Virus record (IMG/VR): IMGVR_UViG_3300030294_000005
Location: 1 to 64,000 of that record
DNA length: 64,000 nucleotides
Reading direction: 5' to 3' (one strand)
The notes below the pieces were generated by a model. It made no database searches and was not told the origin of the DNA. It saw nothing but the letters and a program-made list of their open reading frames with translations. Positions 2,960-59,120 of the stretch are shown here, one piece after another (the first letter of the stretch is position 1; each line of letters begins with the position of its first letter). The position numbers were made by a program, and so were the translations under genes.

Positions 2960-3781
2960 TTAAAAATTCTTATCGCAATAATTCATTATCTCATTCTGAA
3001 TATGAGATTCAAGATTTATAACTAAAATAGAACCATTCTTATCTACAAGTTGAACTCTTCTTCCTTTATCAACAATACCTATTGATTCATATAAAAGTTC
3101 AAACGATTCTAATACATTATTAAGATTACCTGATTCCATTTTTATATAATCAATAACTGATTGATTAGTTATAGGAATTATAAGTCCTGGATCATTATTT
3201 TGTAGTAATACGTTAGTACCGCTTATACCAGCAGATTCACTAACTACTTTTGTCATATATGCAGATTCATGTGATGGATAAATTACTCTATCCCATGTTA
3301 TGATTTTTATGTTCTTTACTTCAGCACCTCTACCTGTATTTTGTATAGTACCTAAAGCTCGTAATGACCATGATGGGAATTCTCCATCCATTATGTCATC
3401 ATTAAAATCTCTACCTAAATCATTATTACAGCCTCTAACATGAGCCATTATGTTGTTGCCATCAACCCATAATTTTAAGATCTTAGAACATGTATTATTA
3501 GGATCAATTGTTTGTTGTCGTCCTATATCTTTAAGCATTGGATGCCCATTTTCATTTTTCATATTACCTGTTTTTATTAATTCAAGAATTCTTGGACTTT
3601 TAGTTTCTGGTATTAATTCTTCTCCAGCATAGAATCTTCCATTTCTATTTTTTTTATTAATATCTTGTAATATTACTTCTACTGTTAATTTATCACTTTT
3701 ATCTCCAATGATAGTTGCTTCTTTTCTTTCAGAGGCAGCAGTTTCATTTATAATAAATCCTATTTTACTATCTAACATCAT
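2960..3781 (-). CDS. Prohead (core) protease, T4 gp21-like
   Basis: NRNGRFY, GHP (His), SWSLRALG (Ser) and WDRVIYPS motifs typical of gp21/S77 head-maturation proteases. Confidence 0.85.
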   Translation of the reverse strand: MMLDSKIGFIINETAASERKEATIIGDKSDKLTVEVILQDINKKNRNGRFYAGEELIPETKSPRILELIKTGNMKNENGHPMLKDIGRQQTIDPNNTCSKILKLWVDGNNIMAHVRGCNNDLGRDFNDDIMDGEFPSWSLRALGTIQNTGRGAEVKNIKIITWDRVIYPSHESAYMTKVVSESAGISGTNVLLQNNDPGLIIPITNQSVIDYIKMESGNLNNVLESFELLYESIGIVDKGRRVQLVDKNGSILVINLESHIQNEIMNYCDKNF

Positions 3782-3801: not shown

Positions 3802-3813
3802 TACTATGATGTT
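3802..3813 (-). promoter_or_regulatory. Late promoter AACA-N6-TA (protease)
   Basis: AACA-TCATAG-TA just upstream of the RBS. Confidence 0.6.
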
Positions 3814-9568: not shown

Positions 9569-9644
9569 AATTATATATTATAATAATGAATAAAAGTTAG
9601 TAGTTATCTTTATTCATAAAAAAATTATAAACTACTAAGAGGAG
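9569..9644 (+). promoter_or_regulatory. Early promoter plus conserved structured 5' leader
   Basis: AATTATATATTATAATAATGAATAA; TTAGTAGTT (9597-9605) pairs with AACTACTAA (9630-9638) next to the RBS. Confidence 0.6.
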
Positions 9645-15360: not shown

Positions 15361-17046
15361 ATGCCAATAGTAGGAACCAGAAAAGTTTCAGACCTAGGTA
15401 GAGGATATGTAAATGATCCTATCAATACCTATGCTGCTTCTTTTAGAGATTTAGCCAAAGATATTTTAAATGAATCAGGTACTGATTTATTTACAGAGCC
15501 TTCAAAAGCTTTGCTATTACAAGGATCAAATGAAACAATGAGGAACTTCTTCGTTGAGAATTCTGCAGATCCAAAGAGTATGACTACATCAGAATATGAA
15601 GATCATATTCAAATGATGAATGAACAGTATTTAAATGATAGAGAGGCAATATTAGAGTATTCACCAGTTGGAGGATTTAACCCAGTAATAGGTATGTCTT
15701 TCCCAATTCATAAAAATATTCTAATGAACAATATCTTCGATAAAGGAGCTATTCAAAAAGTAGTAGCATCTTCACCTAAATTTACCATTTCAATGGAGAC
15801 AAGATTACTTATCACTCCAGATGGTAGAGAAATAGATATGTTTAAAAACCAGGATCAAATGACAGCAGCTATGGATGCAACAGTACCAGTTAAGGAAATT
15901 ACAGTTCCACTTCCAGAATTAGGTACTACTGATATGCTTGCTGCAATTGGAGCCGCTTCTACAGACAATTTATCTATAGAAACAAGAGTATCTTATGTAA
16001 AGATAGTTGATTCATATGAAATTGGAGACACTCTTCCTGATAAAACTGTTGCTACAGCAGCAACAACACTTGATAGATGGATTCCAACAAATCATCTTAA
16101 ATTTGCACCAAATTATGGTGGATTAGAAAGAGTTTTTGTTGAATCAGTTTCATATACAGATGTAAAAGGAATTGTTCAAGAAGATGTAATTTCTGGAGTT
16201 ATGAATAAGAATAAGATTCAAATATCCTCATTAAAAGGTCTTGTTAAAGCTGTAAAGATTTCAGCTAGAAAAGATGCTTCTAGTGCTATGCTTCAAACTT
16301 GTAGCGTATCATGGAAAGTTAAGACTGACATAGTTGAGATACCTAGTGCTATTCCAATAAATACACCAATATCTCCTGATGAAGTTAAAGATATCGGTGC
16401 TTTGTATCAGGTAAATCAATTATCAAAAATTATGAGTTTATTTAAAACAGTTCTTGAGAACTATAAAGATGATAAAATCAGACAGAGCTTGGATACTTCA
16501 TTTGAAACAATGGACCCAACTCAAAGGATTCAATCAAACTTTGACTTTGCTCCAAGATCTGGATACGCTTTGGACCATGTTGAATGGAGACATAAGACAT
16601 TCTTCGATTATCTTGATACTCATGTAACTAAGTTACTTCAGGTATTGAATGATCCTAATATGACAGTAACTGTATTTGGTAGACCTGATCTTATCAGAAA
16701 GATTACCCCAACTGAATATACTTACCAATCCCCAAGTGCTATCGGACCTGTTGAACTTGACTTTGTAAAGACAGTTACAACTTCCGATAAGAGAGTATAT
16801 CAATTTATTTCATCTCAGAAAATGAAGGGTTCAGATAATCTTATTATAGTTCTAAATCCAAGAAACACTGATAGAATTATCTATAGGATTTATGATTACC
16901 AGATGTATGTAAGTAATGAAATAAGAAATGCTCAAAACTATGCTCTTCCTGCAATCCATGCTTTTGAAAGATGGAAGTTTGTAGAATATCAGCCAGTACA
17001 GGGTCGTATGAATATACTAAACCCTACTGGATTAATAGAAGTATAA
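15361..17046 (+). CDS. Major capsid protein
   Basis: 561 aa; head-operon context; N-terminal LNE|S and FVE|N sites; P-domain-like C-terminus (YRIYDYQMYVSNE...PAIHAFER); followed by a strong terminator. Confidence 0.7.
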   Translation: MPIVGTRKVSDLGRGYVNDPINTYAASFRDLAKDILNESGTDLFTEPSKALLLQGSNETMRNFFVENSADPKSMTTSEYEDHIQMMNEQYLNDREAILEYSPVGGFNPVIGMSFPIHKNILMNNIFDKGAIQKVVASSPKFTISMETRLLITPDGREIDMFKNQDQMTAAMDATVPVKEITVPLPELGTTDMLAAIGAASTDNLSIETRVSYVKIVDSYEIGDTLPDKTVATAATTLDRWIPTNHLKFAPNYGGLERVFVESVSYTDVKGIVQEDVISGVMNKNKIQISSLKGLVKAVKISARKDASSAMLQTCSVSWKVKTDIVEIPSAIPINTPISPDEVKDIGALYQVNQLSKIMSLFKTVLENYKDDKIRQSLDTSFETMDPTQRIQSNFDFAPRSGYALDHVEWRHKTFFDYLDTHVTKLLQVLNDPNMTVTVFGRPDLIRKITPTEYTYQSPSAIGPVELDFVKTVTTSDKRVYQFISSQKMKGSDNLIIVLNPRNTDRIIYRIYDYQMYVSNEIRNAQNYALPAIHAFERWKFVEYQPVQGRMNILNPTGLIEV

Positions 17047-17111: not shown

Positions 17112-18266
17112 GTGAACACTATAGATTATGATTTCGGTTCTACATTAGAAGAAGTTATGTTTGCTATAAAAACAAATCCAGTATCTTCTGAATTAAAAAA
17201 GCTTAAGTATGAATTAAATAAGTTTTTTAAAGATTCTGAATGTAGAGAGATAATATACACAGAAAATGTTGATAAGTTGTTTTTTGGTATGTGTGTTATT
17301 CCTATGGTAACAGGTGATGATGCAATGAAAATACTAACTTCTAATGATAAGATAAGAATACAATCATATTATCTAGAATTGGACTCTAAATTATTTTCAA
17401 TTGGATTTACTTCTAGGGAGTTAGTTGCTATATTATTACATGAGATAGGTCATGTGGTAAATACATCAGAACCAGTTGAAGATGTAAGAAGATCTATTGA
17501 TATATATCTGGATAAAAATGATACAACAATTAAATTATCAGATGCTGCTCAATATAAAGATATATTAGCATTTGCAGTAAAAGATAGTATTAGAAAGTTT
17601 ACATCATTATTTTTAATGAATGATGATGAAATAATAGCAGATGAGTTCGCAGTAAGATGTGGATATGCTGCAGATTTAGAATCAGCATATGATAGAGTTC
17701 TTAAAAATATTGGAAGAGTTAATAGAGATGTAGATAATAAACTTATGGCTCTACAATGGACATTAAGATTATATACTGATGTAAAGTTTAAAAGAATTGG
17801 ATCTATTCATGTATTACAGAGGGCGAAGAAGATTACTGCCTCCGAATTAATGAATAGAGAAATGAGTATTGTAATTAGAGCATTAAATCAAATTGATGAT
17901 GATACTTTAATACAAGAATCATTAGATATATTGAAGCGTTCAAGCGACATCTATAAGAATTTCAAATATAAAGGCATGAGATCTTTAGAAGATGATTTAT
18001 ATGAGATTCAAATAAGAGTAAAAAATGTAGATGTTGAAGATGAAGCTTTATCTGTATTAAGAGAGATAAATTCACGATTAGCTATCATAGATGATTATGT
18101 AACATCTGAAAAATTGGATGAAGCTGATATGAATAGATGGTGGCAGTTAAAGAATAAGTATTTATTATTAAGAGATGAGTTATCTAAGAAGACAACTTAT
18201 GACTCAAAATATTATGGTTTATTTGTTCAAACCCCTACTGTTAAAAGTAGATCGGCTATGATGTAA
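17112..18266 (+). CDS. Virion protein with a zincin-like HExxH motif
   Basis: LLHEIGH plus downstream EIIADEFA; IQE|S site. Confidence 0.55.
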   Translation: MNTIDYDFGSTLEEVMFAIKTNPVSSELKKLKYELNKFFKDSECREIIYTENVDKLFFGMCVIPMVTGDDAMKILTSNDKIRIQSYYLELDSKLFSIGFTSRELVAILLHEIGHVVNTSEPVEDVRRSIDIYLDKNDTTIKLSDAAQYKDILAFAVKDSIRKFTSLFLMNDDEIIADEFAVRCGYAADLESAYDRVLKNIGRVNRDVDNKLMALQWTLRLYTDVKFKRIGSIHVLQRAKKITASELMNREMSIVIRALNQIDDDTLIQESLDILKRSSDIYKNFKYKGMRSLEDDLYEIQIRVKNVDVEDEALSVLREINSRLAIIDDYVTSEKLDEADMNRWWQLKNKYLLLRDELSKKTTYDSKYYGLFVQTPTVKSRSAMM

Positions 18267-39770: not shown

Positions 39771-39795
39771 ATATAATAATTAGGAGTTGATTAAT

Positions 39796-41280
39796 ATGGG
39801 AATTTACAATCCTACAAATAATATAATTCATTTAAATGAACTAGCTATATTATTAGAAACGACTGGTGTAGAAAGAAAATGGAAATGTCCTTATTGTGAT
39901 TATCATGATACAAGAGAAAGATTAGTAAGTCATGTTGATGATGAACATGAAGATATGTTATCAGAAGATTATCCTGCATCAAGAGCTGTATTTAATTATA
40001 TAAATAAAAAGGATCATGGTTCTTGTATTGTATGTAAAAAAGAAACTAAATGGAATGATGAGACTTGGAGATATGAAAGATTATGCGAAATGCCAAAATG
40101 TGAGAAAGAATATATAGCTGGAATGAGAGCTAATATGGTTGGTGTATTTGGTAAAGAGAATTTATTAAATGATCCAGAACAACAAAAAAAGATGTTATCT
40201 AATAGAAAAATCTCAGGAACATATAAATTTGAAGATGGTGGTATTAGATCATACTGTGGTTCTTATGAAAAGAAATTATTAGAGTTTTATGATAAAGTTG
40301 TACGTGCTCATTCTAAAGATGTAATCACTCCTGGTCCTGTAATACAATATCAATATCAAGGAAAAACATTGAATTGGATTACTGATGTATACTATGTGCC
40401 AGCAAATCTGGTCCATGATGTAAAAGATGGTGGAGATAATCCTAACAATAGGCAAATGGATGACTATAGAGCTAAGCAAGATGCAAAAGAAGACGATATT
40501 TCTAAATTAAACAAATATAACTATATAAGATTAACTAATAATAATTTTGATCAATTACTATTGATACTTGCTGAAATAAAATATCAAATGATTGATCCGA
40601 ATAAAGAAAATAATACTGATTATATTATAAGAATAAATGAATCTGAATTAGGAGGGGCTATGCCAAATCAAAATAACCAATCAGACAATGCTTATATCAT
40701 ACCATATCTAATGGATAATTCTTTTAATATTGCTTTATCTACTGATAAGTATTTCTCTAATATGTATAAGATAAAAGATAATAAAATAGAAAAAGGATCT
40801 ATCAAAGATTTATATGAGAGTAAATATAATGTATACAAATATACTGGAGATAATTTTAAAGAAGTATATAAAAGTATATTAGAAGATTATAATAATAAAA
40901 CAAATATAGATAATAGATTCTATCTATATGAAAAAGTATGTGGGAAAAACTTATTAAGTATGGATCAATTAATATTTGATGAAAACTTAGAAGACTGTGC
41001 TGACGCATTTATTGAATCAGTATTAGATACTCAGATAAATGAAGCTACACTTATTCATCTTGCTAATAAAGAAACCCATAGTTTATTATACACAGAGTTA
41101 ACTGATATGCTAGATATAAATAGTAAGAAAAGGATATTATTCAATAATGAAAATACAAATATATTACAAGACATGAATGGATACTTTATATATAATGAAC
41201 AAAGTGATAGAAGAACAAAATCTTATGATAGTATATCATCAATACCTTATATAAATATTATGATTAATAGACTAGCTTAA
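39796..41280 (+). CDS. Virion protein with C2H2/C4 zinc fingers and a PD-(D/E)xK-like nuclease domain
   Basis: CPYC..H....H, CIVC...C and TDVYYVPANLVHDVKDG; starts MGIY at ATG 39796 (AGGAG RBS). Confidence 0.55.
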   Translation: MGIYNPTNNIIHLNELAILLETTGVERKWKCPYCDYHDTRERLVSHVDDEHEDMLSEDYPASRAVFNYINKKDHGSCIVCKKETKWNDETWRYERLCEMPKCEKEYIAGMRANMVGVFGKENLLNDPEQQKKMLSNRKISGTYKFEDGGIRSYCGSYEKKLLEFYDKVVRAHSKDVITPGPVIQYQYQGKTLNWITDVYYVPANLVHDVKDGGDNPNNRQMDDYRAKQDAKEDDISKLNKYNYIRLTNNNFDQLLLILAEIKYQMIDPNKENNTDYIIRINESELGGAMPNQNNQSDNAYIIPYLMDNSFNIALSTDKYFSNMYKIKDNKIEKGSIKDLYESKYNVYKYTGDNFKEVYKSILEDYNNKTNIDNRFYLYEKVCGKNLLSMDQLIFDENLEDCADAFIESVLDTQINEATLIHLANKETHSLLYTELTDMLDINSKKRILFNNENTNILQDMNGYFIYNEQSDRRTKSYDSISSIPYINIMINRLA

Positions 41281-44142: not shown

Positions 44143-44292
44143 ATGAATATATATGATAATATACTTAGTGAAGGATTAATAAGATCAAGACGAGATAATA
44201 AATGGGGGTTTAGTAATAAAGAAGGAGAAGAAGTAATACCCTGTATGTGCCACGATCCTATATTATATTTAAATAAGGAGACATCTAAATGA
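44143..44292 (+). pseudogene. Truncated single WG repeat (49 aa)
   Basis: MNIYDNILSEGL...KWGFSNKEGEEVIPC, then loses the pattern; stop overlaps the next ATG. Confidence 0.6.
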
Positions 44293-44822
44293 AAGAATAT
44301 GATATTAAAAATGGATTAATAATAGTAATGCTAAATGATAAATGGGGATTAATGAATAAAGATAATGAAGAAATTATACCATGTATATATGATCATATAT
44401 TTAAATTCGAAGAAGGGATAGCTCCAGTTTCATTAAATGGTAAGATGGGGTTTATTAATACAAAAGGCGAAGAAATAATTCCATGTAAATATATATATAA
44501 TTCATATAATACTATTTTTCATGATGGGCTTTCCCCAGTAAGAGTAGATAATAAATTTGGATATATTAATAAAAAAGGTGAAGAAATAATACCATTAAAA
44601 TATGATATGGCTTGTTATTTTAGAGAAGGATTAGCATCTGTAAATCTAAATGATAAATGGGGATTTATTAATACAAAAGGTGAAGAAGTAGTACCATTGA
44701 TATATGAAAATGCATTATTTAGTTTTGATAAAAAAATATTATGTGTAAGAACAAAGAGTGGATGGGGTACTATTAATAAGGATGATATATTATTTGATAA
44801 AGAGGATGTTCTAAATGAATGA
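44289..44822 (+). CDS. WG-repeat protein 4
   Basis: WG repeats. Confidence 0.9.
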   Translation: MKEYDIKNGLIIVMLNDKWGLMNKDNEEIIPCIYDHIFKFEEGIAPVSLNGKMGFINTKGEEIIPCKYIYNSYNTIFHDGLSPVRVDNKFGYINKKGEEIIPLKYDMACYFREGLASVNLNDKWGFINTKGEEVVPLIYENALFSFDKKILCVRTKSGWGTINKDDILFDKEDVLNE

Positions 44823-45420
44823 ATTAGGATTTGTATCTACTTATCATGAAGGACTTTTTAGAACGATAAAGGATGGTAAATGGGGTTTTATTGATAAAAC
44901 TGGTAAAATAATAATACCATATAAATATGATTTTGCATATAATTTTATGAATGGAATTGCATTTGTAAAACTAAATGGTAAATGTGGATTTATTAATAAG
45001 AAAGATAAAGAAATTGTATTAATAAAATATGACGATATATCTGATTTTAATGAAAAAATATCTATAGTAAAGCTTAATGATAAGTGGGGATTAATAGATA
45101 ATCGTGGAAGAGAAATAATACCATTAAGATATGATTGGATATCTAGATTAGAAAGGGTATTTAAAATAGGAAAGGTATCTAAATTTGATGATTATATTGC
45201 AACAGTAAGGCTAGACAATAAATATGGATTAATAAATGTAAAAGGGGAGGAGATAACACCTATAAAATATGATGATGTATTTGAATTTGATAAGAATGGA
45301 TTTGCAATAGTAAAAGCAAATGATAAATTTGGAGCTATTAATAAAGAAGGCAAAGAAGTTATACCATGTGAATATGATAAAACATCTAATTTTAATGATA
45401 TGGTTAAAGGGGGATATTAA
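44815..45420 (+). CDS. WG-repeat protein 5
   Basis: WG repeats. Confidence 0.9.
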   Translation: MNELGFVSTYHEGLFRTIKDGKWGFIDKTGKIIIPYKYDFAYNFMNGIAFVKLNGKCGFINKKDKEIVLIKYDDISDFNEKISIVKLNDKWGLIDNRGREIIPLRYDWISRLERVFKIGKVSKFDDYIATVRLDNKYGLINVKGEEITPIKYDDVFEFDKNGFAIVKANDKFGAINKEGKEVIPCEYDKTSNFNDMVKGGY

Positions 45421-46248
45421 ATGAAAAAATATGACTATGTATTTAGTTTTAATGATGGATTAGCAAAAGTAGTATTGAATGATAAATGGGGATTTATTAA
45501 TAAAAAAGAAGAAGAAGTAATACCATTAATATATGATATCGTATCTAAATTTAATAAAAGATTAATAGCTGTAAACATTAATAATAAATGTGGAATTATT
45601 AACAGAAAAGGTAAAATAATAATTCCATTAATATATGATAATATGTCTCAATATATTAATAATGATCATATGATAAAAGTAACACTTAATGGTGGTTGGG
45701 GATTTATCAACACTAATAATAAAGTTGTAGTCCCATTAAAATATGATGATATAAGTGAATTTAGTAAAGGGCTTTGCTCATTTAGACTGGATGAAAAATG
45801 GGGTATTATAAATAGAAGGGGTAAAGAAACAGTTTCATGTAAATATGATGATATAGATGAGTTTGAAAATGGATTAGCAGCTGTAAAACTAAATAATAAA
45901 TGGGGTGTTATTAATAAACGAGATAAAGAAATAATACCAATAAAATATGATGATATATTTAGTTTTGATAAAAAAAGACTTCTAGTAGTATTGAATAATA
46001 AATATGGATTAATTAATAGAAATGATGAAGAAATAGTTTCATGTAAATATGATTATATAGATGATTTTATTGATGGATTATCAATGGTGAAATTAAATGA
46101 TAAATTTGGATTCATTGATAGAAATGGTAAAGAAGTTATACCATTAATATATAATGAAGCACATAATTTTCATAATAAGCATACTATAGTAAAATTAAAT
46201 GATAAGTGGATATATATAAATAAAGCTGGTAAAGAAATACAATTATAA
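45421..46248 (+). CDS. WG-repeat protein 6
   Basis: WG repeats. Confidence 0.9.
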   Translation: MKKYDYVFSFNDGLAKVVLNDKWGFINKKEEEVIPLIYDIVSKFNKRLIAVNINNKCGIINRKGKIIIPLIYDNMSQYINNDHMIKVTLNGGWGFINTNNKVVVPLKYDDISEFSKGLCSFRLDEKWGIINRRGKETVSCKYDDIDEFENGLAAVKLNNKWGVINKRDKEIIPIKYDDIFSFDKKRLLVVLNNKYGLINRNDEEIVSCKYDYIDDFIDGLSMVKLNDKFGFIDRNGKEVIPLIYNEAHNFHNKHTIVKLNDKWIYINKAGKEIQL

Positions 46249-46261
46249 GGGGATGTATTAA

Positions 46262-46771
46262 ATGAAAAAATATGATGATCTAGGTAGTTTTAGTGAAGGT
46301 TTAGCTGAGATTAGATTAGGTAGTAAATGGGGGTTTATTAATAGAGAATTAGTAGAGGTTATACCATGTAAATATAGTTCTGCAGAACTTTTTAGTGAAG
46401 GTTTAGCAGTGGTATCATTAGATGGTAAATTTGGATATATAGATAAGGCTGGTAAAGAAGTTATACAGTGTAAGTATGATTATGCATATGATTTTATTGA
46501 AGGAATGGCATTAGTAAGATTAGATGATAATATAGGATATATTAATAAAGAAGGTAAAGAAGTTATATCGTTAATATATGCTAATGGTTATGAATTTTGT
46601 GGTGGCTTAGCAATAGTAGAATCAGGTTGTAGAATGGGATTTGTTGATAAAAAAGGTGAAGAAGTAATTCCATTAATATTTGATGAAGTATATGATTTCA
46701 AAGAAGATTTAGCAGTTGTAAAATTAAATGGTAAATGTTATTTCATAAATAAAGTTGGTGAAGAAATATAA
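46262..46771 (+). CDS. WG-repeat protein 7
   Basis: 169 aa; tandem duplicate of the next gene (534-bp period). Confidence 0.9.
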   Translation: MKKYDDLGSFSEGLAEIRLGSKWGFINRELVEVIPCKYSSAELFSEGLAVVSLDGKFGYIDKAGKEVIQCKYDYAYDFIEGMALVRLDDNIGYINKEGKEVISLIYANGYEFCGGLAIVESGCRMGFVDKKGEEVIPLIFDEVYDFKEDLAVVKLNGKCYFINKVGEEI

Positions 46772-46795
46772 TATAAAAAAGGTGGTATATATTAA

Positions 46796-47305
46796 ATGAA
46801 AAAATATGATGATCTTAATAGATTTTATGAAGGATTAGCAGAAATTAGATTGGGTGATAAATATGGATTTATTAATAAAGAATTGATAGAAGTTGTTCCA
46901 TGTAAATATGATTTCATATCTAGTTTTAGTGAGGGATTAGCAATAGTTGGATTAGATAAGAAATATGGCTTTATTAATAAAGATGGTGAAGAAGTTATAC
47001 CATTAAAATATGATTATGTGTGTGATTTTAATGAAGAACTTGCTTTAGTAAAATTGAATGATAAGATGGGATATATTAATAAAGAAGGTAAAGAAGTTAT
47101 ACCATTGATATATGATGATGTATATGATTTTCATAAAGGATTAGCCATAGTAGTATTGGATAATAAATGGGGATTTATTGATAAAGAAGGTAAAGTAATC
47201 ATATCCTTAATATATGATGAAGCATATGATTTTCATAAAGGTTTAGCAGTTGTAAGATTAAATAGTAAATGTTATTTTATAAACAAAGCTGGTAAAGAAA
47301 TATAA
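46796..47305 (+). CDS. WG-repeat protein 8
   Basis: 169 aa; same start MKKYDDL, same end EI* and same downstream spacer as protein 7. Confidence 0.9.
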   Translation: MKKYDDLNRFYEGLAEIRLGDKYGFINKELIEVVPCKYDFISSFSEGLAIVGLDKKYGFINKDGEEVIPLKYDYVCDFNEELALVKLNDKMGYINKEGKEVIPLIYDDVYDFHKGLAIVVLDNKWGFIDKEGKVIISLIYDEAYDFHKGLAVVRLNSKCYFINKAGKEI

Positions 47306-47328
47306 TATAAAAAAGGTGGTATGTATTA

Positions 47329-47781
47329 ATGTATAAAGTAATAGGTAAATTTCAAGAATTAGATGGAATAGAAAAAGAAAGTCTTAGTGAAATTAAAAAA
47401 GAACTAGGTCTTATTGGTTCATTATCTGCAGATGTAGGAAATATTGAATTATATTATACAGATGATGGTAACACATATGCTATAACTAAAGACAGTGAGT
47501 ATTATTATGGTAATAAGGGTGATACAGAAGATATTATTATTGCAAGGAATAAGCAAGGAAGACCTAGAGATACTATGACATTAGGAGATGTATCTAATAT
47601 ATTAAAAGAGCAAAATCCTAATGTATTATTAAATGATGTAAAATTATATGATAAATTTCTTAATCCCATTATGAGTATTGCTATTAATAATAAAAAGAAA
47701 CTTATTAGTTTATTAACAGATAGTGATTTTGTTGGAATTAATAAGCCAGCAAAAGTTTTAAGTGATATCAACTTTAAATAA
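47329..47781 (+). CDS. Hypothetical protein
   Basis: AAGGTGG RBS. Confidence 0.6.
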   Translation: MYKVIGKFQELDGIEKESLSEIKKELGLIGSLSADVGNIELYYTDDGNTYAITKDSEYYYGNKGDTEDIIIARNKQGRPRDTMTLGDVSNILKEQNPNVLLNDVKLYDKFLNPIMSIAINNKKKLISLLTDSDFVGINKPAKVLSDINFK

Positions 47782-48045: not shown

Positions 48046-48120
48046 AATTATATATTATAATAATGAATAAAAGTTAGTAGTAAATCTGTATTCAATAAAA
48101 TTATAAACTACTAAAAGGAG
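48046..48120 (+). promoter_or_regulatory. Early promoter plus conserved structured 5' leader
   Basis: AATTATATATTATAATAATGAATAAAAG; TTAGTAGT pairs with ACTACTAA before AAGGAG. Confidence 0.6.
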
Positions 48121-49295: not shown

Positions 49296-49790
49296 ATGGG
49301 TATATACAATGTAAATAAAATTATAACTGAATCTTATGACACTAATGCTGATATAAATAAAATTATAACAAGTTTATCTAGTAAGGAAAGAGACAATCTC
49401 CTTAAGCGTCCTGGATCTATAGAACAATCATATACAACTGTATATGAAAAAATAGAAAAGGTAGATAGGGTTGTTGCAGGTTATATTAGATTAAATAAAC
49501 CAGAGGAAGGTCCAATATATTGCTTAGAGTTTGCAATACGTTCAGAGTTTAGGCATCGTGGCTTAGCATATAACATGCTAAAAGAAGCATTAGAAAGCAA
49601 TTCTAAACAACGTTTTATAATATCTCATCCAGATAATGATAATATAGGTTCTCAGAAAGTAGTAGAGAAGGCTGGATTTAAATTACTAGAAAGACAAAAA
49701 TATGTATCTATTTATCTTTATGATAAAAAGTTTCCAAATCATACAGCAAAGCAAATCTATAGTAGTATAGAAGGTGAGACTAAAGACTGA
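49296..49790 (+). CDS. GNAT acetyltransferase, probably virion-packaged
   Basis: EFRHRGLA (motif A), NIGSQKVVEKAGF (motif B); starts MGIY...IITE|S. Confidence 0.8.
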   Translation: MGIYNVNKIITESYDTNADINKIITSLSSKERDNLLKRPGSIEQSYTTVYEKIEKVDRVVAGYIRLNKPEEGPIYCLEFAIRSEFRHRGLAYNMLKEALESNSKQRFIISHPDNDNIGSQKVVEKAGFKLLERQKYVSIYLYDKKFPNHTAKQIYSSIEGETKD

Positions 49791-52830: not shown

Positions 52831-52894
52831 TTGCTGATTTATTTTTTAATACTAATCTAATAATATAACTTTATTATAATTATATATTATAGTA

Positions 52895-53419
52895 TTGGAT
52901 GAAAAAAATAAGGGGGAATTAAATATTATGATAATAAAAAAATTATCAGGACATACTAATTATAATCATAATAATATACAAGAATCATGCTTAGATTGTG
53001 AAGAATGTAGACATGAAAATTGTAAATGGTGTAAAGAAGAATTTTATATTCAAGACAAAAAATTTAATAGTTTTAAAGACGCTACAGATTTTGAAAATGA
53101 ATTAATAAAATTAATACCATTTAATAAAGAAGGATACTTACCTATAGGAGATAATTATTTCTTTATTAAAGATAAGACATTATTTATCCACCTATTTTTG
53201 GAAAATAAATCTATAGATGCCAGATGTAGTAAAAAGTCATCTTTATATGCTGAAAAGTTTGTAATGGTAACTAACAGACAATTGCTTTATAGTAAATGTA
53301 CATGTAAAGATAAAAATTATGATGATGGGAATTCTTGTCATAGATATGGTTGTAATAATAATATTTGTTATGATAAAATGAGTATTAGTGAAACTGCTGG
53401 AAAACAATGGATTATATAA
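52895..53419 (+). CDS. Cys-rich hypothetical protein
   Basis: CLDC..C....CKWC and C-terminal Cys cluster. Confidence 0.55.
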   Translation: MDEKNKGELNIMIIKKLSGHTNYNHNNIQESCLDCEECRHENCKWCKEEFYIQDKKFNSFKDATDFENELIKLIPFNKEGYLPIGDNYFFIKDKTLFIHLFLENKSIDARCSKKSSLYAEKFVMVTNRQLLYSKCTCKDKNYDDGNSCHRYGCNNNICYDKMSISETAGKQWII

Positions 53420-53482
53420 ATGTATTTATATTAAAACTAGAGATTCTATTCTCTAGTTTTATTTTTTGTTGAATATTAGGTA

Positions 53483-53494
53483 AACATAAGGATA
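53483..53494 (+). promoter_or_regulatory. Late promoter AACA-N6-TA
   Basis: AACA-TAAGGA-TA. Confidence 0.6.
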
Positions 53495-53509
53495 ATATTA
53501 TATAAGGAG

Positions 53510-56500
53510 ATGATTTATATGGGAGTTTATGATGCAACTAAATTTCATGAAATAAAAACGAATGAAAGAGAAATAGAAAAGTATAAAGTTCAATATCCTA
53601 AATTATCACATGTAAGATGTGATAAAGAAAATGAAGGAATAATACTAGATAATAATGGAGCATTTGTAGCAATTATTCAATGGGATAACAAGTCTAAATA
53701 TATAGTAGCTTTAGAAGTTGCTCCAGAGTATCGTAAAAATGGAATTGGTAAATACTTATTAAAAAAAGCCTATTCTAAAGGTATAAATAAATTATCAGTA
53801 AATAAGAGTAATACATCTGCTATAAAGTTATATATTAAGAGTGGATATAAAGAAGAAAAAACCGATAAGACTATGATATATATGATTAAAGAATCCACTA
53901 TAAATGAAAACTATTTTTTTAGTGGCGATGATATAGTATTAAATATAGAAAAATGGAAAGCAGATTCACCGAATAATATACTATATGTAACTGGATTAAG
54001 TGGTAGTGGAAAGACTACACTAGCAGCAGAATATGAAAAAAAGTATAATGCTGAAATGTTTGAAATAGATGGTTTGGAATATAGTTATGACGCATCTAAA
54101 AGTAAATTATTACAAAAAGCAAAAGATAAATATCCAGAATATGCTGAAGCATTAAAAAATGACTGGAAAGATTTAAAAGGAAATCCAGGAGTAGATTTAT
54201 TAATAAGAGTTTTATTATATGTAATTAAAGAAATGAAGGATTCTGGAAAATTATATATATTAGATGGGGTACAAATATTTCAATGGTTAGATCCTGATAC
54301 TTTAAAAAGTCAACCATTAATTATTAAAGGAACATCTATGACTAAAAGTATATATCAAAGATTTAAAAGAAATGGTGGAGATAAAATAGATTGGATTGCT
54401 GAACTACGTAATAAATTTCCACAATTGTTTAAAAGATATCTAAAAGATGAAAAGGAAGTTAGTACATTTAAAAAATCAATAAAAGAATCATATAATATAG
54501 GAGATCAATTTAGTTGGGAAACTTTTGGTGGAAACAAATATTCTGGAATAATCTCAGAAATAGATAGCAATGTTTTAATTGTTAAATTAAAAGATGGAAC
54601 ACAGAAAGCTGTTGAGATGAGAGAATCTTCTACTGCTGATACAGATGATATTAATGATTGGGAAAAGAATACTAATTCAGAATTGATTGGTGATGATTCA
54701 AACAATCTATCAGAGTTAGAGAAGGAAAAGAATAATTATGATATGCTTATTTATAAACAAAAAAGAGTAGCAGATTGGAAGAGTGAAGAATTATTTGGTA
54801 AAGATAATACTGAAAGATATGATGAATTAAAAGATAAATATTTAAAAACTATTGATAATTTTGATGATGTATATAATACTCCACAAATAAATACCGAAGC
54901 ATCTATATCATCAGCAGATGGATTTGAAATAGACGATTCTAAAGATAATGAATATACTAAATTAAGCGATGATCCAAATAATGAAGTTCCAGGATATGAT
55001 TCAGCTACTTTAAAACAAGCTATAATGTGGTGCAATAATACAATGGTAAGTATGATATTACCAGTTGGATCTTTAAAAGAATTAGAAGATTCTTATGTTA
55101 AATGGAGATCAATGACTAGAAAGCATCAAAGAGATAGTGATAATAAAAGTATAGAATTATTTGGAATGAATAATTTAGAACATTTTGATTATTTAAAATC
55201 AAAATTTATTGGTACTCAAAGTAGTGGAGATAAATCATATGATACTACATCAGTACTAGATGTGTCTGGTAAAGCAATAGAAATAGATCAGATACGAGAT
55301 GATTTAACTGCAAATGGCAATACGAATGGAAATGCAAATGGAGACATGCATGAATCATCTATGTTGGATTATGGTATATCATTATTAAGAATAAATAATA
55401 TTATAACAGAAGATATCTGTTCTAATATAGTAAAAGAAAATGCTATAAAAGATATAAAAAATAAACTTAATAACGCATATGATAAATCATATGATTCACT
55501 TCCAACACAATTACCATACTTTTCATTTAATGAAATACAATCTAGAATAGACACCTCTAACCCATACAAATATGCTGGTCTTAGTAAAGATATAAGTTTA
55601 AAAACATGGTTAGAGAGTTATTCCTTGATATGTAGTGGGATACTCGATTCTAGAATGAAAGAGTATACTCCATTATGGATAACTAAACTAGATAGTCTAT
55701 ATAGAGATTTATATAAAGCAACGGATGATACAAAGATACATCAATTAAAAGAAAATATATTATTATTAGGATGGAATCCAGAAGTTAATTTTACTTATGA
55801 AAATAGAATTAAGGCTACTGATAGATGCATGTCTATCATATCAGAGTATTATAAAGATAATTCTATAAATTTATCTCCATTAATTAATAATATAAATTTA
55901 AATAATAATGTAATAACTGAGCAAAATAAAAAAGATGAATTATATCCAATATATATATTATTATCATATACTAGTACTATTGCAGGAAAGGTAATATCAA
56001 GAGTTACAGATAGTATATATTCTCATGCTTGTTTAAGTCTTGATTCATCACTTCAAAAACTATATAGTTTTAATGCAAACGTGCATGGGTTCTCACTAGA
56101 ATCTATAACTGAGTATCTGAAGTATAATAAGAATAGTATAATACAACTCAGTTGTGTATTTGTTAAAGCTCCAGACTTATCTATTATAGAATCTGGATTA
56201 AATGATTTATTATTGAATATAAGAAATACATCATATAGCTTTTTAAATATACTTGGAATAATGTTAGACAAATCTATACAGCTAAATAATTCTATGATAT
56301 GTTCTCAATTTGTAGATTATATGTTTAAATCAATAAATGTAGATATAACTAATAAACCAAGTGGATTAGTAATGCCTAAAGATTTTCAAGTGTTAAAGAA
56401 TAATAAAGTATATAAATTATATGAAGGAAAGATAGCTGACTATAATAGTCAGAAGATTAATTCAATGATGAATGTACTAATAAAGAAAGCTATATATATA

Positions 56501-57097
56501 AAAGAGAGTTTAAATATAATAAATGAGTCACAATTTATAGACACACTATCAAAGAACTCCAATGACATTAATATTATAGCATACTTGAATCAATCACATG
56601 ATATACTGGAAGCTAGTAATCAATTAATATATAATGATTATATAGATCCATATATAAATATATCTTGCATGACTGAATCAAAAGAATTTCCAGTTCAATT
56701 TGATAAAGATGGTAATCTTCTAATTAGAAATAAGAAAAATATAGATTTTGAAGTTGAATACTCTAAAGCACATAAGCTATTAAAGATATATGATAGCACT
56801 GATAATACAGAAGGTATGAAATATGAACTATCTAAACTATGGTTTCTAAATTTATTACTAGAAGATATGATCTATACTCAAAAGAATAAAGATCCAGAAT
56901 ATTTAAAAGTAAGAGCAAGATCTTTAAATGATTTTAATAAGTATATTATTGTAGTGTCTAAACAAGATAAAGATTTTAATTTTACTGAGTACTATAATAA
57001 TACTCCATTTAGTGATGAGACAACAAAGATAAATAGTAGCACATTAAAATATACTGGAGAAATACTAGAAAAGATATTAAAACATTTAATCCATTAA
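53510..57097 (+). CDS. Multi-domain virion polyprotein: GNAT, P-loop kinase, small beta-barrel, permuted NlpC/P60 and conserved domains (likely start 53519)
   Basis: EYRKNGIG/NTSAIKLY; YVTGLSGSGKTT; YSHACLSLD...MICSQFV; domains separated by xxE|S-type sites. Confidence 0.75.
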   Translation: MIYMGVYDATKFHEIKTNEREIEKYKVQYPKLSHVRCDKENEGIILDNNGAFVAIIQWDNKSKYIVALEVAPEYRKNGIGKYLLKKAYSKGINKLSVNKSNTSAIKLYIKSGYKEEKTDKTMIYMIKESTINENYFFSGDDIVLNIEKWKADSPNNILYVTGLSGSGKTTLAAEYEKKYNAEMFEIDGLEYSYDASKSKLLQKAKDKYPEYAEALKNDWKDLKGNPGVDLLIRVLLYVIKEMKDSGKLYILDGVQIFQWLDPDTLKSQPLIIKGTSMTKSIYQRFKRNGGDKIDWIAELRNKFPQLFKRYLKDEKEVSTFKKSIKESYNIGDQFSWETFGGNKYSGIISEIDSNVLIVKLKDGTQKAVEMRESSTADTDDINDWEKNTNSELIGDDSNNLSELEKEKNNYDMLIYKQKRVADWKSEELFGKDNTERYDELKDKYLKTIDNFDDVYNTPQINTEASISSADGFEIDDSKDNEYTKLSDDPNNEVPGYDSATLKQAIMWCNNTMVSMILPVGSLKELEDSYVKWRSMTRKHQRDSDNKSIELFGMNNLEHFDYLKSKFIGTQSSGDKSYDTTSVLDVSGKAIEIDQIRDDLTANGNTNGNANGDMHESSMLDYGISLLRINNIITEDICSNIVKENAIKDIKNKLNNAYDKSYDSLPTQLPYFSFNEIQSRIDTSNPYKYAGLSKDISLKTWLESYSLICSGILDSRMKEYTPLWITKLDSLYRDLYKATDDTKIHQLKENILLLGWNPEVNFTYENRIKATDRCMSIISEYYKDNSINLSPLINNINLNNNVITEQNKKDELYPIYILLSYTSTIAGKVISRVTDSIYSHACLSLDSSLQKLYSFNANVHGFSLESITEYLKYNKNSIIQLSCVFVKAPDLSIIESGLNDLLLNIRNTSYSFLNILGIMLDKSIQLNNSMICSQFVDYMFKSINVDITNKPSGLVMPKDFQVLKNNKVYKLYEGKIADYNSQKINSMMNVLIKKAIYIKESLNIINESQFIDTLSKNSNDINIIAYLNQSHDILEASNQLIYNDYIDPYINISCMTESKEFPVQFDKDGNLLIRNKKNIDFEVEYSKAHKLLKIYDSTDNTEGMKYELSKLWFLNLLLEDMIYTQKNKDPEYLKVRARSLNDFNKYIIVVSKQDKDFNFTEYYNNTPFSDETTKINSSTLKYTGEILEKILKHLIH

Positions 57098-57148
57098 GTA
57101 CTGTAGTAGGGGTAACTCCCTACTATAATATTTTTTTACAATATAATC

Positions 57149-57189: not shown

Positions 57190-57711
57190 ATGATATTAAC
57201 AGGAATGCAAATTAAAAAAGAAATAGAGGCTGGTAATATATTTATATCAGACTTTGATGAAAAAAGATTAGGTCCTAATTCATACAATTTAAGATTATAT
57301 AATAAGCTAATGATATATGCAAATGACGTATTAGATATGAAAAGAAAAAATAACTGTATAGAACTAACAATACCAAAAGAAGGACTTATATTAGAACCTG
57401 GAGAATTATATCTAGGTAAGACAATAGAATATACTGAATGTGGTAATTTTGTTCCAATGATTGAAGGCAGATCTAGTGTAGCTAGATTGGGTCTTAAGGT
57501 CCATTTAACTGCAGGATTCGGCGATATAGGAAATAAACTTTCATGGACATTAGAGTTAGAAGCTACTAAACGTATTAGAATATATCCTGATGTAGAGGTA
57601 TGTCAGATATATTATAATACAGTTATGGGAGATACCTCAATACGATATGATGGTAAGTATCAAAATGGTAAAGAAATAGAACCTAGTAAACTATATAAAG
57701 ATTTTGAATAA
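57190..57711 (+). CDS. dcd: dCTP deaminase
   Basis: MILT...I, PNSYNLRL, EGRSSVARLG, AGFGD.G and WTLEL motifs of the trimeric dCTP deaminase family. Confidence 0.9.
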   Translation: MILTGMQIKKEIEAGNIFISDFDEKRLGPNSYNLRLYNKLMIYANDVLDMKRKNNCIELTIPKEGLILEPGELYLGKTIEYTECGNFVPMIEGRSSVARLGLKVHLTAGFGDIGNKLSWTLELEATKRIRIYPDVEVCQIYYNTVMGDTSIRYDGKYQNGKEIEPSKLYKDFE

Positions 57712-58218: not shown

Positions 58219-58710
58219 ATGAAAATAATATTAGTTAAAGAAGAAAATGGTCTTTTATATGAAGTTGCAAAGATTGTCTATAAGAATAAACCTACAGGAT
58301 TTATCTTTAAACCTTCAACTCAGTTAGATATAATTGGTAAAATGATAACTGATGAAACTGATAAAGATAAGCAAGATATTATAATAAGAGATTTTAGTTA
58401 TATTAAAAATTTATTTAGTCCATTATTAGAAAAAAATAATGAGATTATTAAAAAGGATGAAAATGAAACTAGAATAAAAATAATTAATAGATATCTAGCA
58501 ATGATGGCTTGTAGATATGGTTTAACAATTATTGATTTGAATAAAGATGGAAGATATTATGAGTTACATAAAAGATACATATATAGAAGAGTTAAACCAT
58601 TTACTAGGCCAGCTATGATGCATGAAAATCTATCATATCCTATATCTGCATTAAATGAATGTATTAAAAAAAATAATGAAGCTTTTTTTGGCACTAAAAA
58701 AGTTAAATAA
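58219..58710 (+). CDS. Paralogue family B, copy 1
   Basis: Shared ~120 aa MKIILVKE..GFLYEV..IVYK.KP.GF.FK domain. Confidence 0.75.
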   Translation: MKIILVKEENGLLYEVAKIVYKNKPTGFIFKPSTQLDIIGKMITDETDKDKQDIIIRDFSYIKNLFSPLLEKNNEIIKKDENETRIKIINRYLAMMACRYGLTIIDLNKDGRYYELHKRYIYRRVKPFTRPAMMHENLSYPISALNECIKKNNEAFFGTKKVK

Positions 58711-58724
58711 GGGAGATATGTAAA

Positions 58725-59120
58725 ATGAAAATAATATTAGTTAAAGAAAAAGAAGACGGCTTTTTCTATGAAGTTGTAAAAGTTATTTATAGAAAAAAGG
58801 CTATAGGATTCACTTTTAAAGTTTCAACTAAATTAAATATATTTGGTAGAATGATAGCAGATGAGACTGATAAAGATAAGCAAAATGAAATAATAAATGA
58901 TTTTAATAATATTAAAGATATCTTTTATTCCCATATTGGAGAAGATATAGATATTGGTGAAGAAAATAAAAGTATGAAGGAAATTATTAATACATACTTA
59001 ACAAAAATAACTACTAAGTATGGTTTAATACTTATTGATTTTAAAAAAGATAAAGATTTTTATCAATGTTATAAAAAAGGTATATATAAAAGAGTTGAAC
59101 CAATTACTCAAAAAATCTAA
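58725..59120 (+). CDS. Paralogue family B, copy 2
   Basis: Core domain only. Confidence 0.75.
   Translation: MKIILVKEKEDGFFYEVVKVIYRKKAIGFTFKVSTKLNIFGRMIADETDKDKQNEIINDFNNIKDIFYSHIGEDIDIGEENKSMKEIINTYLTKITTKYGLILIDFKKDKDFYQCYKKGIYKRVEPITQKI

Follow-up and report, generated by a model that had tools for sequence, protein, structure and literature searches.

A putative late protein of an uncultured AR9-like jumbo phage combines a conserved carrier with exchangeable enzyme modules and predicted prohead protease sites

Results

Organization of the locus

The window analysed here, 64,000 nucleotides of the uncultured viral record IMGVR_UViG_3300030294_000005 (positions 1 to 64,000), contains at 53510-57097 on the plus strand an uninterrupted open reading frame of 1195 codons; residue numbers below refer to this reading frame and all features of the gene lie on the plus strand. 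The likely true start is the ATG at 53519 (1192 aa), as the ribosome binding site AAGGAG at 53504-53509 abuts the first ATG and lies 9 nt from that at 53519-53521 (Met4), which is also where P0001, the 1192-aa public protein from JGI, begins. The residues MGVY, which an earlier note on this sequence had described as a tag, are therefore the probable N-terminus. The gene is apparently monocistronic, being preceded by an intrinsic terminator-like hairpin that ends the upstream unit (53432-53461; 12-bp stem plus T-run; 4 such sites were found versus 0.6 expected in the region) and followed by a terminator-like hairpin at 57102-57127. A sequence at 53483-53494, AACA-TAAGGA-TA, matches the AR9 late promoter consensus AACA-(6N)-TA/G (PMC5312081), and the same motif class lies upstream of the prohead protease gene, the gene for an 880-aa head protein and the major capsid protein (MCP) gene, while no early-type ATATATTAT motif is present; the pattern is short, however, and AACA-N6-TW arises by chance about 0.09 times per 90 nt, so that the late promoter named in the earlier note is suggestive rather than proven. 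The gene lies outside the head-gene cluster, among small genes with early-type promoters.

Domain architecture

The first module (aa 9-126; 53534-53887) is a GNAT acetyltransferase domain, which exceeded the Pfam cut-offs over residues 33-119 (PF13673, 34 bits, cut-off 23.6; PF13508, 34.1, cut-off 27; PF00583, 33.3, cut-off 20.7), contains an intact RxxGxG acetyl-CoA motif (RKNGIGK), was modelled by AF2 with pLDDT >90 and matched RimI/Naa60/PAT-like GNATs in Foldseek searches. It is followed by a P-loop kinase-like domain (aa 142-325; 53933-54484) with the Walker A sequence GLSGSGKT. In 19 copies of this module, GxxGxGK, an Asp, E/D-G and a lid Arg are invariant or nearly so, and a profile built from them hit adenylate kinase-, shikimate kinase- and AdkA-like chains in the PDB, although all Pfam and NCBIfam hits were below cut-off. 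A small predicted beta-barrel (aa 333-369; 54506-54616; moderate pLDDT) completes the N-terminal region and is also found at the N-terminus of the orthologue P0003.

The remainder of the protein begins with two copies of a ~70-aa four-helix repeat (aa 375-448 and 498-567; 54632-55210), related by reciprocal HMM hits (E 1e-18 to 1e-30) and separated by an acidic disordered linker (449-492), and continues with a helical domain, hel3 (aa 618-781; 55361-55852). Next is a permuted papain-like domain of YiiX/C92 type (aa 811-993; 55940-56488), which was matched to 3kw0 (BcPPNE) by phmmer (E 0.007) and by Foldseek (E 4.7e-4, TM normalized to the target 0.59), and to YiiX (2if6; Foldseek E 0.037, TM 0.59). 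His839 (in YSHAC) precedes Cys931 (in MICSQ), in the permuted order, and these residues align with His49 and Cys154 of 3kw0 (numbering from PMC3142127); in 46 homologues the Cys is invariant and the His at least 90% conserved, while the third polar residue may be Asn855 or Glu864. Because PF05708 gave no hit at E<=1, the domain should be classified at the superfamily or clan level only. A small helical spacer, link5 (aa 1006-1049; 56525-56656), which is replaced by cargo in other phages, leads to the C-terminal domain (aa 1062-1195; 56693-57094). The latter is the best-conserved module, had no solved or named relative in our searches, and is also attached to nuclease- or kinase-bearing proteins that lack the peptidase-like domain.

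A strict Glu-containing motif is enriched at module boundaries

The earlier note proposed that sites of the form xxE separate the domains. This loose pattern is not discriminating, and the phiKZ-type pattern [SAG]xE is not enriched in the protein (13 observed versus 13 expected), whereas the stricter motif [ILMV]-x-E-[SAG] is a real signal. [IM]xES occurs 8 times versus 0.86 expected, a count reached in none of 5000 shuffled sequences. For [ILMV]xE[SAG], all other ORFs of the window together gave 43 sites versus 42.5 expected, and only this ORF (10 versus 3.2) and that of the 880-aa head-module protein (11590-14232, plus strand; 11 versus 3.7) stood out, apart from one 114-aa ORF (2 versus 0.3, p=0.04). 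The 880-aa protein contains a segment like the AR9 g115 "virion protein", shares the AR9 head-module gene order, and belongs to a family with 170 sites versus 60 expected. Three further sites (E182, E225 and E232) lie in the C-terminal tail of the prohead protease (2960-3781, minus strand), which was assigned to the gp21/S77 and phiKZ gp175/S80 families by Pfam (PF03420 Peptidase_S77, 44.9 bits, cut-off 27; PF20034 S80, 29.4, cut-off 23.4) and by PHROG ("head maturation protease"); C-terminal autoprocessing is known in SPN3US and phiKZ (PMC5694885). The MCP carries the predicted site LNE38|S (15466-15477, plus strand), which served as our reference for the motif. Among 120 MCP orthologues, 102 have a strict site at residues 30-45, 175 of 324 sites fall in the first 100 residues, and the mature part shows no excess. 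The motif itself is inferred rather than measured.

Within the protein, E128, E133, E326, E372, E615, E804, E999 and E1056 lie in coil or low-pLDDT linkers between predicted domains, and E1006 lies on the first turn of a helix just after its linker. In contrast, 13 of 16 non-strict [ILMV]xE sequences lie in helices or strands. NTE463, which the earlier note had listed as a site, does not fit the motif, while IIE894-S and LYE972-G fit it but lie inside secondary structure of the YiiX-like domain. The linker between the GNAT and P-loop modules (53885-53911; disordered at 130-138) carries the predicted sites IKE128|S and INE133|N. Among homologues, [ILV]-[NDT]-E-[SGN] is conserved at the start of 15 of 18 P-loop modules, and a motif follows 13 of 17 GNAT module ends, although in the homologues P0025, P0029 and P0038 the INES of the P-loop module lies at residues 2-5, such that this element could be part of the fold rather than a site. 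IKE326|S (54479-54490) ends the P-loop module, MRE372|S (54617-54628) marks the cargo/carrier junction, and MHE615|S (55346-55357) precedes hel3 at a position that is poorly conserved in homologues. ITE804|Q (55913-55924; disordered at 800-807) lies in the linker before the peptidase-like domain, where [ILMV]xE is present in 28 of 46 aligned homologues; 69 of 90 peptidase modules are preceded by a motif. After this domain lie IKE999|S and INE1006|S (56498-56530), with the motif present at these positions in 39 of 46 and 20 of 46 homologues, respectively, and following 76 of 90 peptidase module ends. MTE1056|S (56669-56680; disordered at 1051-1062) precedes the C-terminal domain, with a motif present in 37 of 46 homologues and before 56 of 93 C-terminal modules, so that sites are not universal.

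Conservation of the sites at domain boundaries, a condition on which the proposal had been said to stand or fall, was examined across 97 homologues. The observed to expected ratio was 4.58 within 10 residues of module ends and 1.51 in module interiors (Fisher odds ratio 3.1, p 1e-29), although homologues are not independent and the p-values are therefore inflated. Twelve decoy motifs (including E to D, Q or K, reversed order, S/A/G at P3, charged or hydrophobic P1' and shifted spacing) gave ratios of 0.7-1.75. In independent architectures, such as those of the homologues L035 and L038, every junction from hel3 onward carries a site.

Enzyme modules differ among related phages

The helical repeats, hel3, the YiiX-like domain and the C-terminal domain form the conserved, single-copy part of the family, while the enzyme modules vary. 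The latter are found in at least four slots: at the N-terminus, between hel3 and the peptidase-like domain, between the peptidase-like and C-terminal domains (the main slot in other phages), and after the C-terminal domain. They include GNAT, P-loop kinase-like, NUDIX, HD, metallophosphatase, HAD, transglutaminase-like, DUF6582 and Zn-finger endonuclease domains. Orthologous loci followed by a dCTP deaminase gene carry different cargo or none, indicating exchange at a syntenic position. A tblastn search of GenBank phages found no homologue, only metagenomic relatives appear in BFVD, and no relative occurs in a cultured phage; neither these nor a Foldseek search of the PDB revealed homology to known inner-body, ejection or internal proteins.

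Discussion

The observation recorded in the earlier note holds: the reading frame is intact, the domains it named are confirmed at the level described above, and sites of a precise protease-like type (aliphatic P3, Glu P1, small P1') lie at domain boundaries. Its interpretation, that a packaged polyprotein is matured in the head into separate acetyltransferase, kinase and amidase effectors whose domains may swap between phages, is only partly supported. Domains do swap, and a gp21-family protease is encoded, but the architecture is that of a conserved carrier plus optional cargo rather than of three equivalent effector cassettes. The papain-like "amidase" is part of the conserved single-copy core, not a swappable effector, and its closest solved relatives are proposed lipid-amide hydrolases, not proven peptidoglycan amidases (PMC3142127).

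We propose, with a probability of roughly 0.6, that the gene encodes a late-expressed internal head protein in which the carrier (helical repeats, hel3, YiiX-like hydrolase and C-terminal domain) takes the polypeptide into the prohead, and the RimI-like GNAT and the P-loop kinase-like NTPase are its cargo. During head maturation the prohead protease would cut after Glu at [I/L/V/M]-x-E|[S/A/G] motifs in the inter-module linkers, releasing the YiiX-like domain, each cargo enzyme and the C-terminal domain as separate polypeptides, and those that remain in the capsid would enter the next host with the DNA and act before any phage gene is expressed. Our analysis shows by computation the domain identities, that of the P-loop domain as kinase-like only, and their intact catalytic motifs, the linker motif with its specificity, its placement at module boundaries and its concentration in head-morphogenesis proteins of this phage, the exchange of cargo at a syntenic locus and the presence of the protease, while presence in the virion, late expression, cleavage, the retention of particular fragments, ejection and the targets of the enzymes are inferred from sequence and predicted structure alone. 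Known gp21/gp175 substrates mostly lose terminal propeptides and are not dissected into several functional enzymes, which weighs against this model. It remains possible, although somewhat less likely than not, that a whole clade of uncultured AR9-like jumbo phages (847 cluster representatives at E<=1e-30) possesses a "plug-and-play" capsid cargo system, in which the carrier loads arbitrary enzymes through at least four slots, each flanked by prohead protease sites, and maturation converts one gene product into a phage-specific cocktail of free, pre-made enzymes injected with the DNA. Such a cocktail could include acetyltransferase, kinase, NUDIX, HD, phosphatase or nuclease activities, and these may be immediate counter-defence or takeover factors, needed before the virion RNA polymerase has produced anything.

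Other explanations appear unlikely but are not excluded. The protein might be a cytoplasmic multi-enzyme protein that is never packaged, its linker motif being unused or serving another purpose, such as regulated cleavage in the cytoplasm. The gene is adjacent to nucleotide-metabolism genes, including that of a dCTP deaminase in conserved synteny, and away from the head cluster, and cargo such as P-loop kinase, NUDIX, HD and phosphatase domains could serve dU-DNA nucleotide metabolism. However, this would not explain a position-specific, decoy-controlled protease-type motif at module boundaries that is otherwise confined to head proteins, or why unrelated enzymes are always attached to the same non-enzymatic carrier modules. 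A related and also improbable idea is that the protein enters the prohead and is cut, but that its pieces are expelled during maturation like T4 gp22, gp67 and gp68, in which case nothing would be delivered to the next host and the enzymes would act only during assembly. Its multiple closely spaced sites and acidic helical segments (pI 4.1-5.3) do resemble scaffold or propeptide material, and propeptide fragments generally leave the head (PMC10052503), but three or more folded enzymes of very varied chemistry with intact active sites are difficult to justify as disposable scaffold. Furthermore, the predicted enzyme fragments are 14-22 kDa and basic (pI 8.9-9.4), as are retained, DNA-associated internal proteins such as those of T4.

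It is also doubtful that a different enzyme is responsible for the proposed cleavage. The YiiX-like domain itself might cut the linkers in cis or trans, before or after delivery, as its cysteine hydrolase dyad is conserved in nearly every family member and polyvalent proteins are thought to autoprocess through embedded peptidases (PMC5512222). Canonical NlpC/P60 enzymes cleave after (D-iso)Glu. Nevertheless, the same motif marks the MCP propeptide region, the protease tail and the 880-aa head protein, none of which has such a domain, and homologues without the peptidase-like domain still show an excess of sites (P0054, 8 versus 2.3; P0098, 12 versus 4.1). In addition, YiiX and BcPPNE have a hydrophobic S1 pocket (PMC3142127), which fits poorly with Glu at P1, while aliphatic-x-Glu is the signature of T4 gp21. 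Least likely is processing by the M48-like zincin encoded beside the MCP gene (17112-18266), a position conserved in AR9 (g118, "zincin protease"). Although zincins are the most common proposed processing enzymes of polyvalent proteins, the Pfam match is marginal (E 6e-4, just below cut-off), and Glu at P1 with a P3 determinant and Ser at P1' is the documented specificity of the gp21/gp175/gp245 proteases.

Comparison with known systems

Processed internal head proteins and polyvalent proteins are both known, and the protein described here has features of each. T4 Alt is an enzyme that is packaged in the head, cut by gp21 after aliphatic-x-Glu (ITE-6 and LTE-619; PMC5694885) and injected with the DNA to act on host proteins. 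Alt, however, is a single enzyme that loses short terminal peptides, while here several unrelated enzymes and a large conserved carrier share one chain with predicted sites in almost every linker, and we detected no sequence homology to Alt or the internal proteins. The phiKZ inner-body proteins and SPN3US ejection proteins are jumbo phage head proteins processed by an S80 protease at multiple x-x-Glu motifs, with Ser preferred at P1', as for SPN3US gp245, and with C-terminal self-cleavage of the protease (PMC10052503, PMC5694885). Those proteases require Ala, Ser or Gly at P3, where the present motif is aliphatic, and their substrates lose N-terminal propeptides and carry no recognizable enzyme cassettes.

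The polyvalent proteins of phages and conjugative elements (Iyer, Burroughs, Anand, de Souza and Aravind 2017; PMC5512222) likewise combine several conflict-type enzyme domains, GNAT and kinases among them, in one polypeptide, vary extensively in architecture and are predicted to travel with the DNA and be released proteolytically. The present protein shares with them two or more unrelated effector-type domains and extensive architectural variation among relatives, but hallmark domains (zincin, LPD, ArdC-N and others) were not detected by Pfam in it at E<=1 or in 16 homologues at E<=0.001. The peptidases listed for polyvalent proteins are zincin, assemblin-like, DD and LonC, none being papain-like, whereas here release is proposed to depend on the separate prohead protease acting at defined linker motifs, and a fixed carrier with defined cargo slots is present. 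The YaeF/YiiX (MEROPS C92) enzymes BcPPNE and YiiX share the permuted His-Cys order, conserved dyad and predicted fold of the papain-like domain, but are stand-alone cytoplasmic proteins of ~190 aa and of unknown physiological role, while here the domain is embedded in a phage carrier. Finally, in the MuF-fused polymorphic toxins of temperate phages and in the P1 Dar/DdrB system (the latter cited in PMC5512222) a conserved head-associated module carries variable toxin or anti-restriction domains into the capsid for delivery. In these systems the carrier is a different one (MuF or DarA), the cargo sits at one end only, and protease sites do not flank each module.

Genomic context

The window is a 25% G+C portion of a 236-kb uncultured jumbo phage, IMG/VR UViG 3300030294_000005, whose major capsid protein (MCP) is distantly related to those of phiR1-37, Listeria LPJP1 and the Staphylococcus S6 group. 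The gene order of its head module, which consists of a motif-rich head protein, a small ORF, the MCP and a zincin, mirrors that of g115-g118 in Bacillus phage AR9, although the protease that sits beside g115 in AR9 lies about 8 kb upstream here. The zincin (17112-18266, +) is M48-like (Pfam E 6e-4) and directly follows the MCP, as does the AR9 g118 'zincin protease'. The window also encodes a split RNA polymerase beta subunit, a GroEL and a dCTP deaminase, while no tRNA genes were found in it. Tandem paralogous small ORFs, both beginning MKIILVKE, are present at 58219-58710 and 58725-59120 (+), and several ORFs of similar size at 44289-47781 may form another paralogue array.

The ORF of interest (53510-57097, 1195 aa) is intact. 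Because the AAGGAG ribosome-binding site abuts the first ATG and lies 9 nt from the ATG at 53519, the real product probably starts 'MGVY...' and has 1192 aa, which is also where P0001, a 1192-aa public protein from JGI, begins; residues are nevertheless numbered here from the first ATG. A tblastn search with the whole protein and with its C-terminal third against 50,697 GenBank phage records returned nothing, or only marginal 'cysteine peptidase' hits in Fusobacterium phages (E 0.01).

Domain content and predicted structure

Pfam places a GNAT domain at residues 33-119, above cut-off. In an AF2 model of the N-terminal region (1-380, mean pLDDT 82.7), the GNAT domain spans 9-126 and is followed by a disordered stretch (130-138), a P-loop domain (142-325), a small beta-barrel (333-369) and a disordered tail (371-380). 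Foldseek puts the GNAT nearest to RimI, Naa60 and PAT-type protein acetyltransferases. A profile of 19 P-loop modules retains Walker A, an Asp, an E/D-G and a lid Arg, and hits adenylate-, shikimate- and AdkA-like kinases, so that the domain is kinase-like without an assigned substrate.

The AF2 model of the core (373-1195, pLDDT 75.9) contains, in order, two copies of a ~70-aa four-helix repeat (375-448 and 498-567) around an acidic disordered linker, a helical domain (618-781), an alpha/beta domain (811-993), a small helical spacer (1006-1049) and a C-terminal domain (1062-1195). The repeats were confirmed by reciprocal HMM hits. The alpha/beta domain matches the permuted papain-like enzymes 3kw0 and YiiX both by sequence and by fold; its Cys931 is invariant and its His839 nearly invariant. 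No solved or named relative was found for any other part of the core: NCBIfam gave nothing for the core, ESM Atlas scored <0.5 on the C-terminal domain, and a profile of that domain found nothing meaningful in the PDB. An HMM search for paralogous carrier modules elsewhere in the window found none, detecting only a stand-alone GNAT.

A putative cleavage motif at module boundaries

The earlier note proposed that prohead-protease sites of the form xxE separate the enzyme domains. This pattern by itself is not a test, since the protein has 78 Glu, but the observation holds in that the proposed sites share a narrower pattern. In this protein [IM]xES occurs 8 times against 0.86 expected, and no shuffle in 5000 reaches 8, while the [SAG]xE motif of the phiKZ/SPN3US type is at expectation and was rejected for this phage. 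For [ILMV]xE[SAG], all other ORFs in the window together give 43 against 42.5 expected. Apart from a 114-aa ORF that reaches p=0.04 (2 vs 0.3), only two proteins in the window clearly stand out, namely this one (10 vs 3.2) and the 880-aa product of 11590-14232 (+) (11 vs 3.7). The latter lies in the head module and contains a segment like AR9 virion protein g115; seven of its sites occur in the first 243 aa at 25-50 aa spacing, it has a K/E-rich region and two hydrophobic membrane-like stretches, and its family shows 170 sites vs 60 expected. It looks like a heavily processed scaffold or core protein. The protease has three sites in its C-terminal tail, where the SPN3US and phiKZ proteases cut themselves. 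Among 120 MCP orthologues, 102 have a strict site at residues 30-45 (LNE38, followed by Ser, in this phage), and 175 of 324 sites fall in the first 100 residues, whereas the mature region has no excess. A stand-alone 164-aa GNAT at 49296-49790 (+) has an ITE motif followed by Ser at residue 12, a possible short propeptide like the six-residue one of T4 Alt.

Thus, in this clade the motif, which was derived from sequence statistics rather than from mapped termini, behaves like a prohead-protease recognition site. The protease at 2960-3781 belongs to the T4 gp21 family (Pfam S77, with S80); T4 gp21 cuts after Leu/Ile-x-Glu, including ITE-6 and LTE-619 of the ejected enzyme Alt, and SPN3US gp245 prefers Ser at P1'.

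In the predicted structures, the strict sites E128, E326, E372, E615, E999 and E1056 are in coil or low-confidence linkers, E1006 and E1034 are at helix ends, and E894 and E972 are inside the papain-like domain and are probably not cut. In contrast, 13 of the 16 non-strict [ILMV]xE sequences are inside helices or strands. HMMs of eight modules were built and mapped on all homologues. Core and cargo were aligned separately. In the 97 proteins other than the query, the motif is 4.58x enriched within 10 residues of module ends, 1.51x in module interiors and 2.72x in unassigned regions (Fisher OR 3.1, p about 1e-29, although the sequences share ancestry and are not independent). Twelve decoy patterns, in which Glu was replaced by Asp, Gln or Lys, the order was reversed, P3 was aromatic, polar or S/A/G, P1' was charged or hydrophobic, or the spacing was altered, give 0.7-1.75x at boundaries; the signal is therefore not linker composition.

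Motifs follow 76/90 papain-like modules and precede 69/90; they precede 56/93 C-terminal modules and 15/18 P-loop modules, and follow 13/17 GNAT modules. Some sites are poorly conserved, and the INES of the P-loop module sits at residues 2-5 in three proteins, so that it may be structural. In IMG/VR loci with independently arranged cargo, such as those designated L035 and L038, every junction from the helical domain onward carries one site, while the repeat-repeat and repeat-helical junctions usually carry none. The conserved pattern is thus one in which the repeats and helical domain form a single unit, followed by the papain-like domain, each cargo domain and the C-terminal domain, with sites between all of these units.

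A conserved carrier with exchangeable cargo

Most of the 98 first-pass homologues are ~800 aa and match only residues ~380-1195. The enzymes are optional and mobile: GNAT and P-loop are N-terminal here, but elsewhere they lie between the papain-like and C-terminal domains, between the helical and papain-like domains, or between the two repeats. Other relatives carry NUDIX, HD, calcineurin-like phosphoesterase, HAD, a transglutaminase-like domain, DUF6582, or SAP + DUF6434. A subgroup lacking the papain-like domain joins the AR9/S6-type Zn-finger endonuclease to the same repeats, P-loop, helical and C-terminal modules (proteins P0090-P0094 of other phages). The Zn-finger endonuclease of the phage studied here (39787-41280, +) has almost the same promoter and leader as the carrier gene (AAACATAAGaATAATAT), and may be another delivered enzyme.

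The C-terminal domain occurs once per contig in 38 distinct IMG/VR contigs (39 loci), most of them 210-265 kb. In 16 of the 38 loci examined the gene is followed by a dCTP deaminase, as it is here (57190-57711, +), and those syntenic genes still carry no cargo, one or two P-loops, GNAT, GNAT + P-loop in either order, or unknown inserts of 270-330 aa. Together with the AR9-like promoters and head module, the deaminase hints at a PBS1/AR9-like dU-containing genome. Some orthologues (IMG/VR loci L020, L024, L032 and L033; 495-540 aa) appear to lack the helical repeats, which may be real or may reflect the choice of start codon or a split gene. The neighborhood of the homologue P0029 on a 323-kb contig was uninformative, because its genes are almost all unannotated. 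An exhaustive profile search found 847 cluster representatives at E<=1e-30, with lengths of 485-2121 aa. The suggestion in the earlier note that domains swap between phages is therefore strongly supported, but the papain-like domain belongs to the conserved core rather than to the swappable set.

Promoter-like and terminator-like elements

The gene is bracketed by terminator-like hairpins at 53432-53461 and 57102-57127. Of 73 genes in the window, 19 have the AR9 early element ATATATTAT upstream, against ~3.6 expected, and a separate set of 17 has AACA-N6-TW, against ~6.5 expected; only one gene has both. The second set includes the protease, the 880-aa protein, the MCP and the carrier gene (AACA-TAAGGA-TA at 53483-53494). 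Examples of the early type (ATATATTATW) are at 2005-2030, 9570-9600, 48050-48075 and 52880-52895, and of the late type at 3813, 11556, 15287, 39759 and 53483. The two classes correspond to the experimentally defined AR9 early (AAATATATATTAT-6N-G) and late (AACA-6N-TA/G) promoters (PMC5312081), which suggests an AR9-like two-polymerase transcription program and supports late expression of the carrier gene by analogy only. Sigma-70-type promoter matches are at chance level in this AT-rich DNA (49 vs 47) and were not used.

Discussion

We propose that the protein is made late, that its conserved non-enzymatic modules take it into the prohead, and that the gp21-type protease then cuts it at the linker motifs. 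For this phage, cleavage would yield the GNAT (14.5 kDa, pI 9.4), the P-loop domain (22.4 kDa, pI 8.9), a 5-kDa barrel, an acidic repeat fragment (27.7 kDa, pI 4.4), the helical domain (21.9 kDa), the papain-like enzyme (22.2 kDa, pI 9.0), a 5.8-kDa spacer and the C-terminal domain (16.6 kDa). The predicted enzyme fragments are basic (pI 8.9-9.4), while the non-enzymatic carrier fragments are acidic (pI 4.1-5.3), and this charge split could decide which pieces stay with the DNA. That the basic enzyme fragments may remain and be ejected while acidic pieces leave is speculation. While the domain assignments, the motif statistics and the exchange of cargo rest on comparisons of sequences and predicted structures, everything about packaging, cleavage and ejection is inference, and the gene is not in the head cluster. 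The interpretation in the earlier note, of a packaged polyprotein matured in the head into separate effectors, is thus only partly supported.

The closest solved relatives of the papain-like domain have a hydrophobic S1 pocket and are proposed to hydrolyze lipid-amino-acid amide bonds (PMC3142127). A role at the host envelope during entry is therefore as plausible as peptidoglycan cleavage, and the same pocket argues against this domain being the enzyme that cuts after Glu.

If the model holds, the motif plus the carrier modules would provide a rule for predicting which proteins these uncultured jumbo phages inject, with no need for virion proteomics. It would also provide a catalogue of pre-packaged enzymes that act at time zero of infection, which is the least understood phase of jumbo-phage biology and the phase in which host defenses must be neutralized, as well as a natural design for loading foreign enzymes into large capsids and releasing them by maturation cleavage, which would be useful for engineered phages in laboratory systems. 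Furthermore, it would extend the role of gp21-type proteases from trimming propeptides to dissecting a true polyprotein, a strategy familiar from RNA viruses but not documented for tailed phages. Even if packaging were refuted, the carrier/cargo family and the sharply defined linker motif would remain unexplained features of a very large protein family.

A literature search found no paper describing a carrier with protease-flanked cargo slots, and it is this proposed arrangement that is new, whereas protease-processed internal head proteins and multi-enzyme phage proteins are known. The protein has no detectable homology to T4 Alt and the internal proteins, to the phiKZ/SPN3US inner-body or ejection proteins, or to the 'polyvalent proteins' (PMC5512222). 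It lacks the hallmark zincin and LPD domains, and papain-like peptidases are not among the four peptidase superfamilies listed for polyvalent proteins. Nevertheless, in how it is proposed to work, the system resembles T4 Alt and the internal proteins, and the phiKZ/SPN3US inner-body or ejection proteins, and it also fits the concept of polyvalent proteins.
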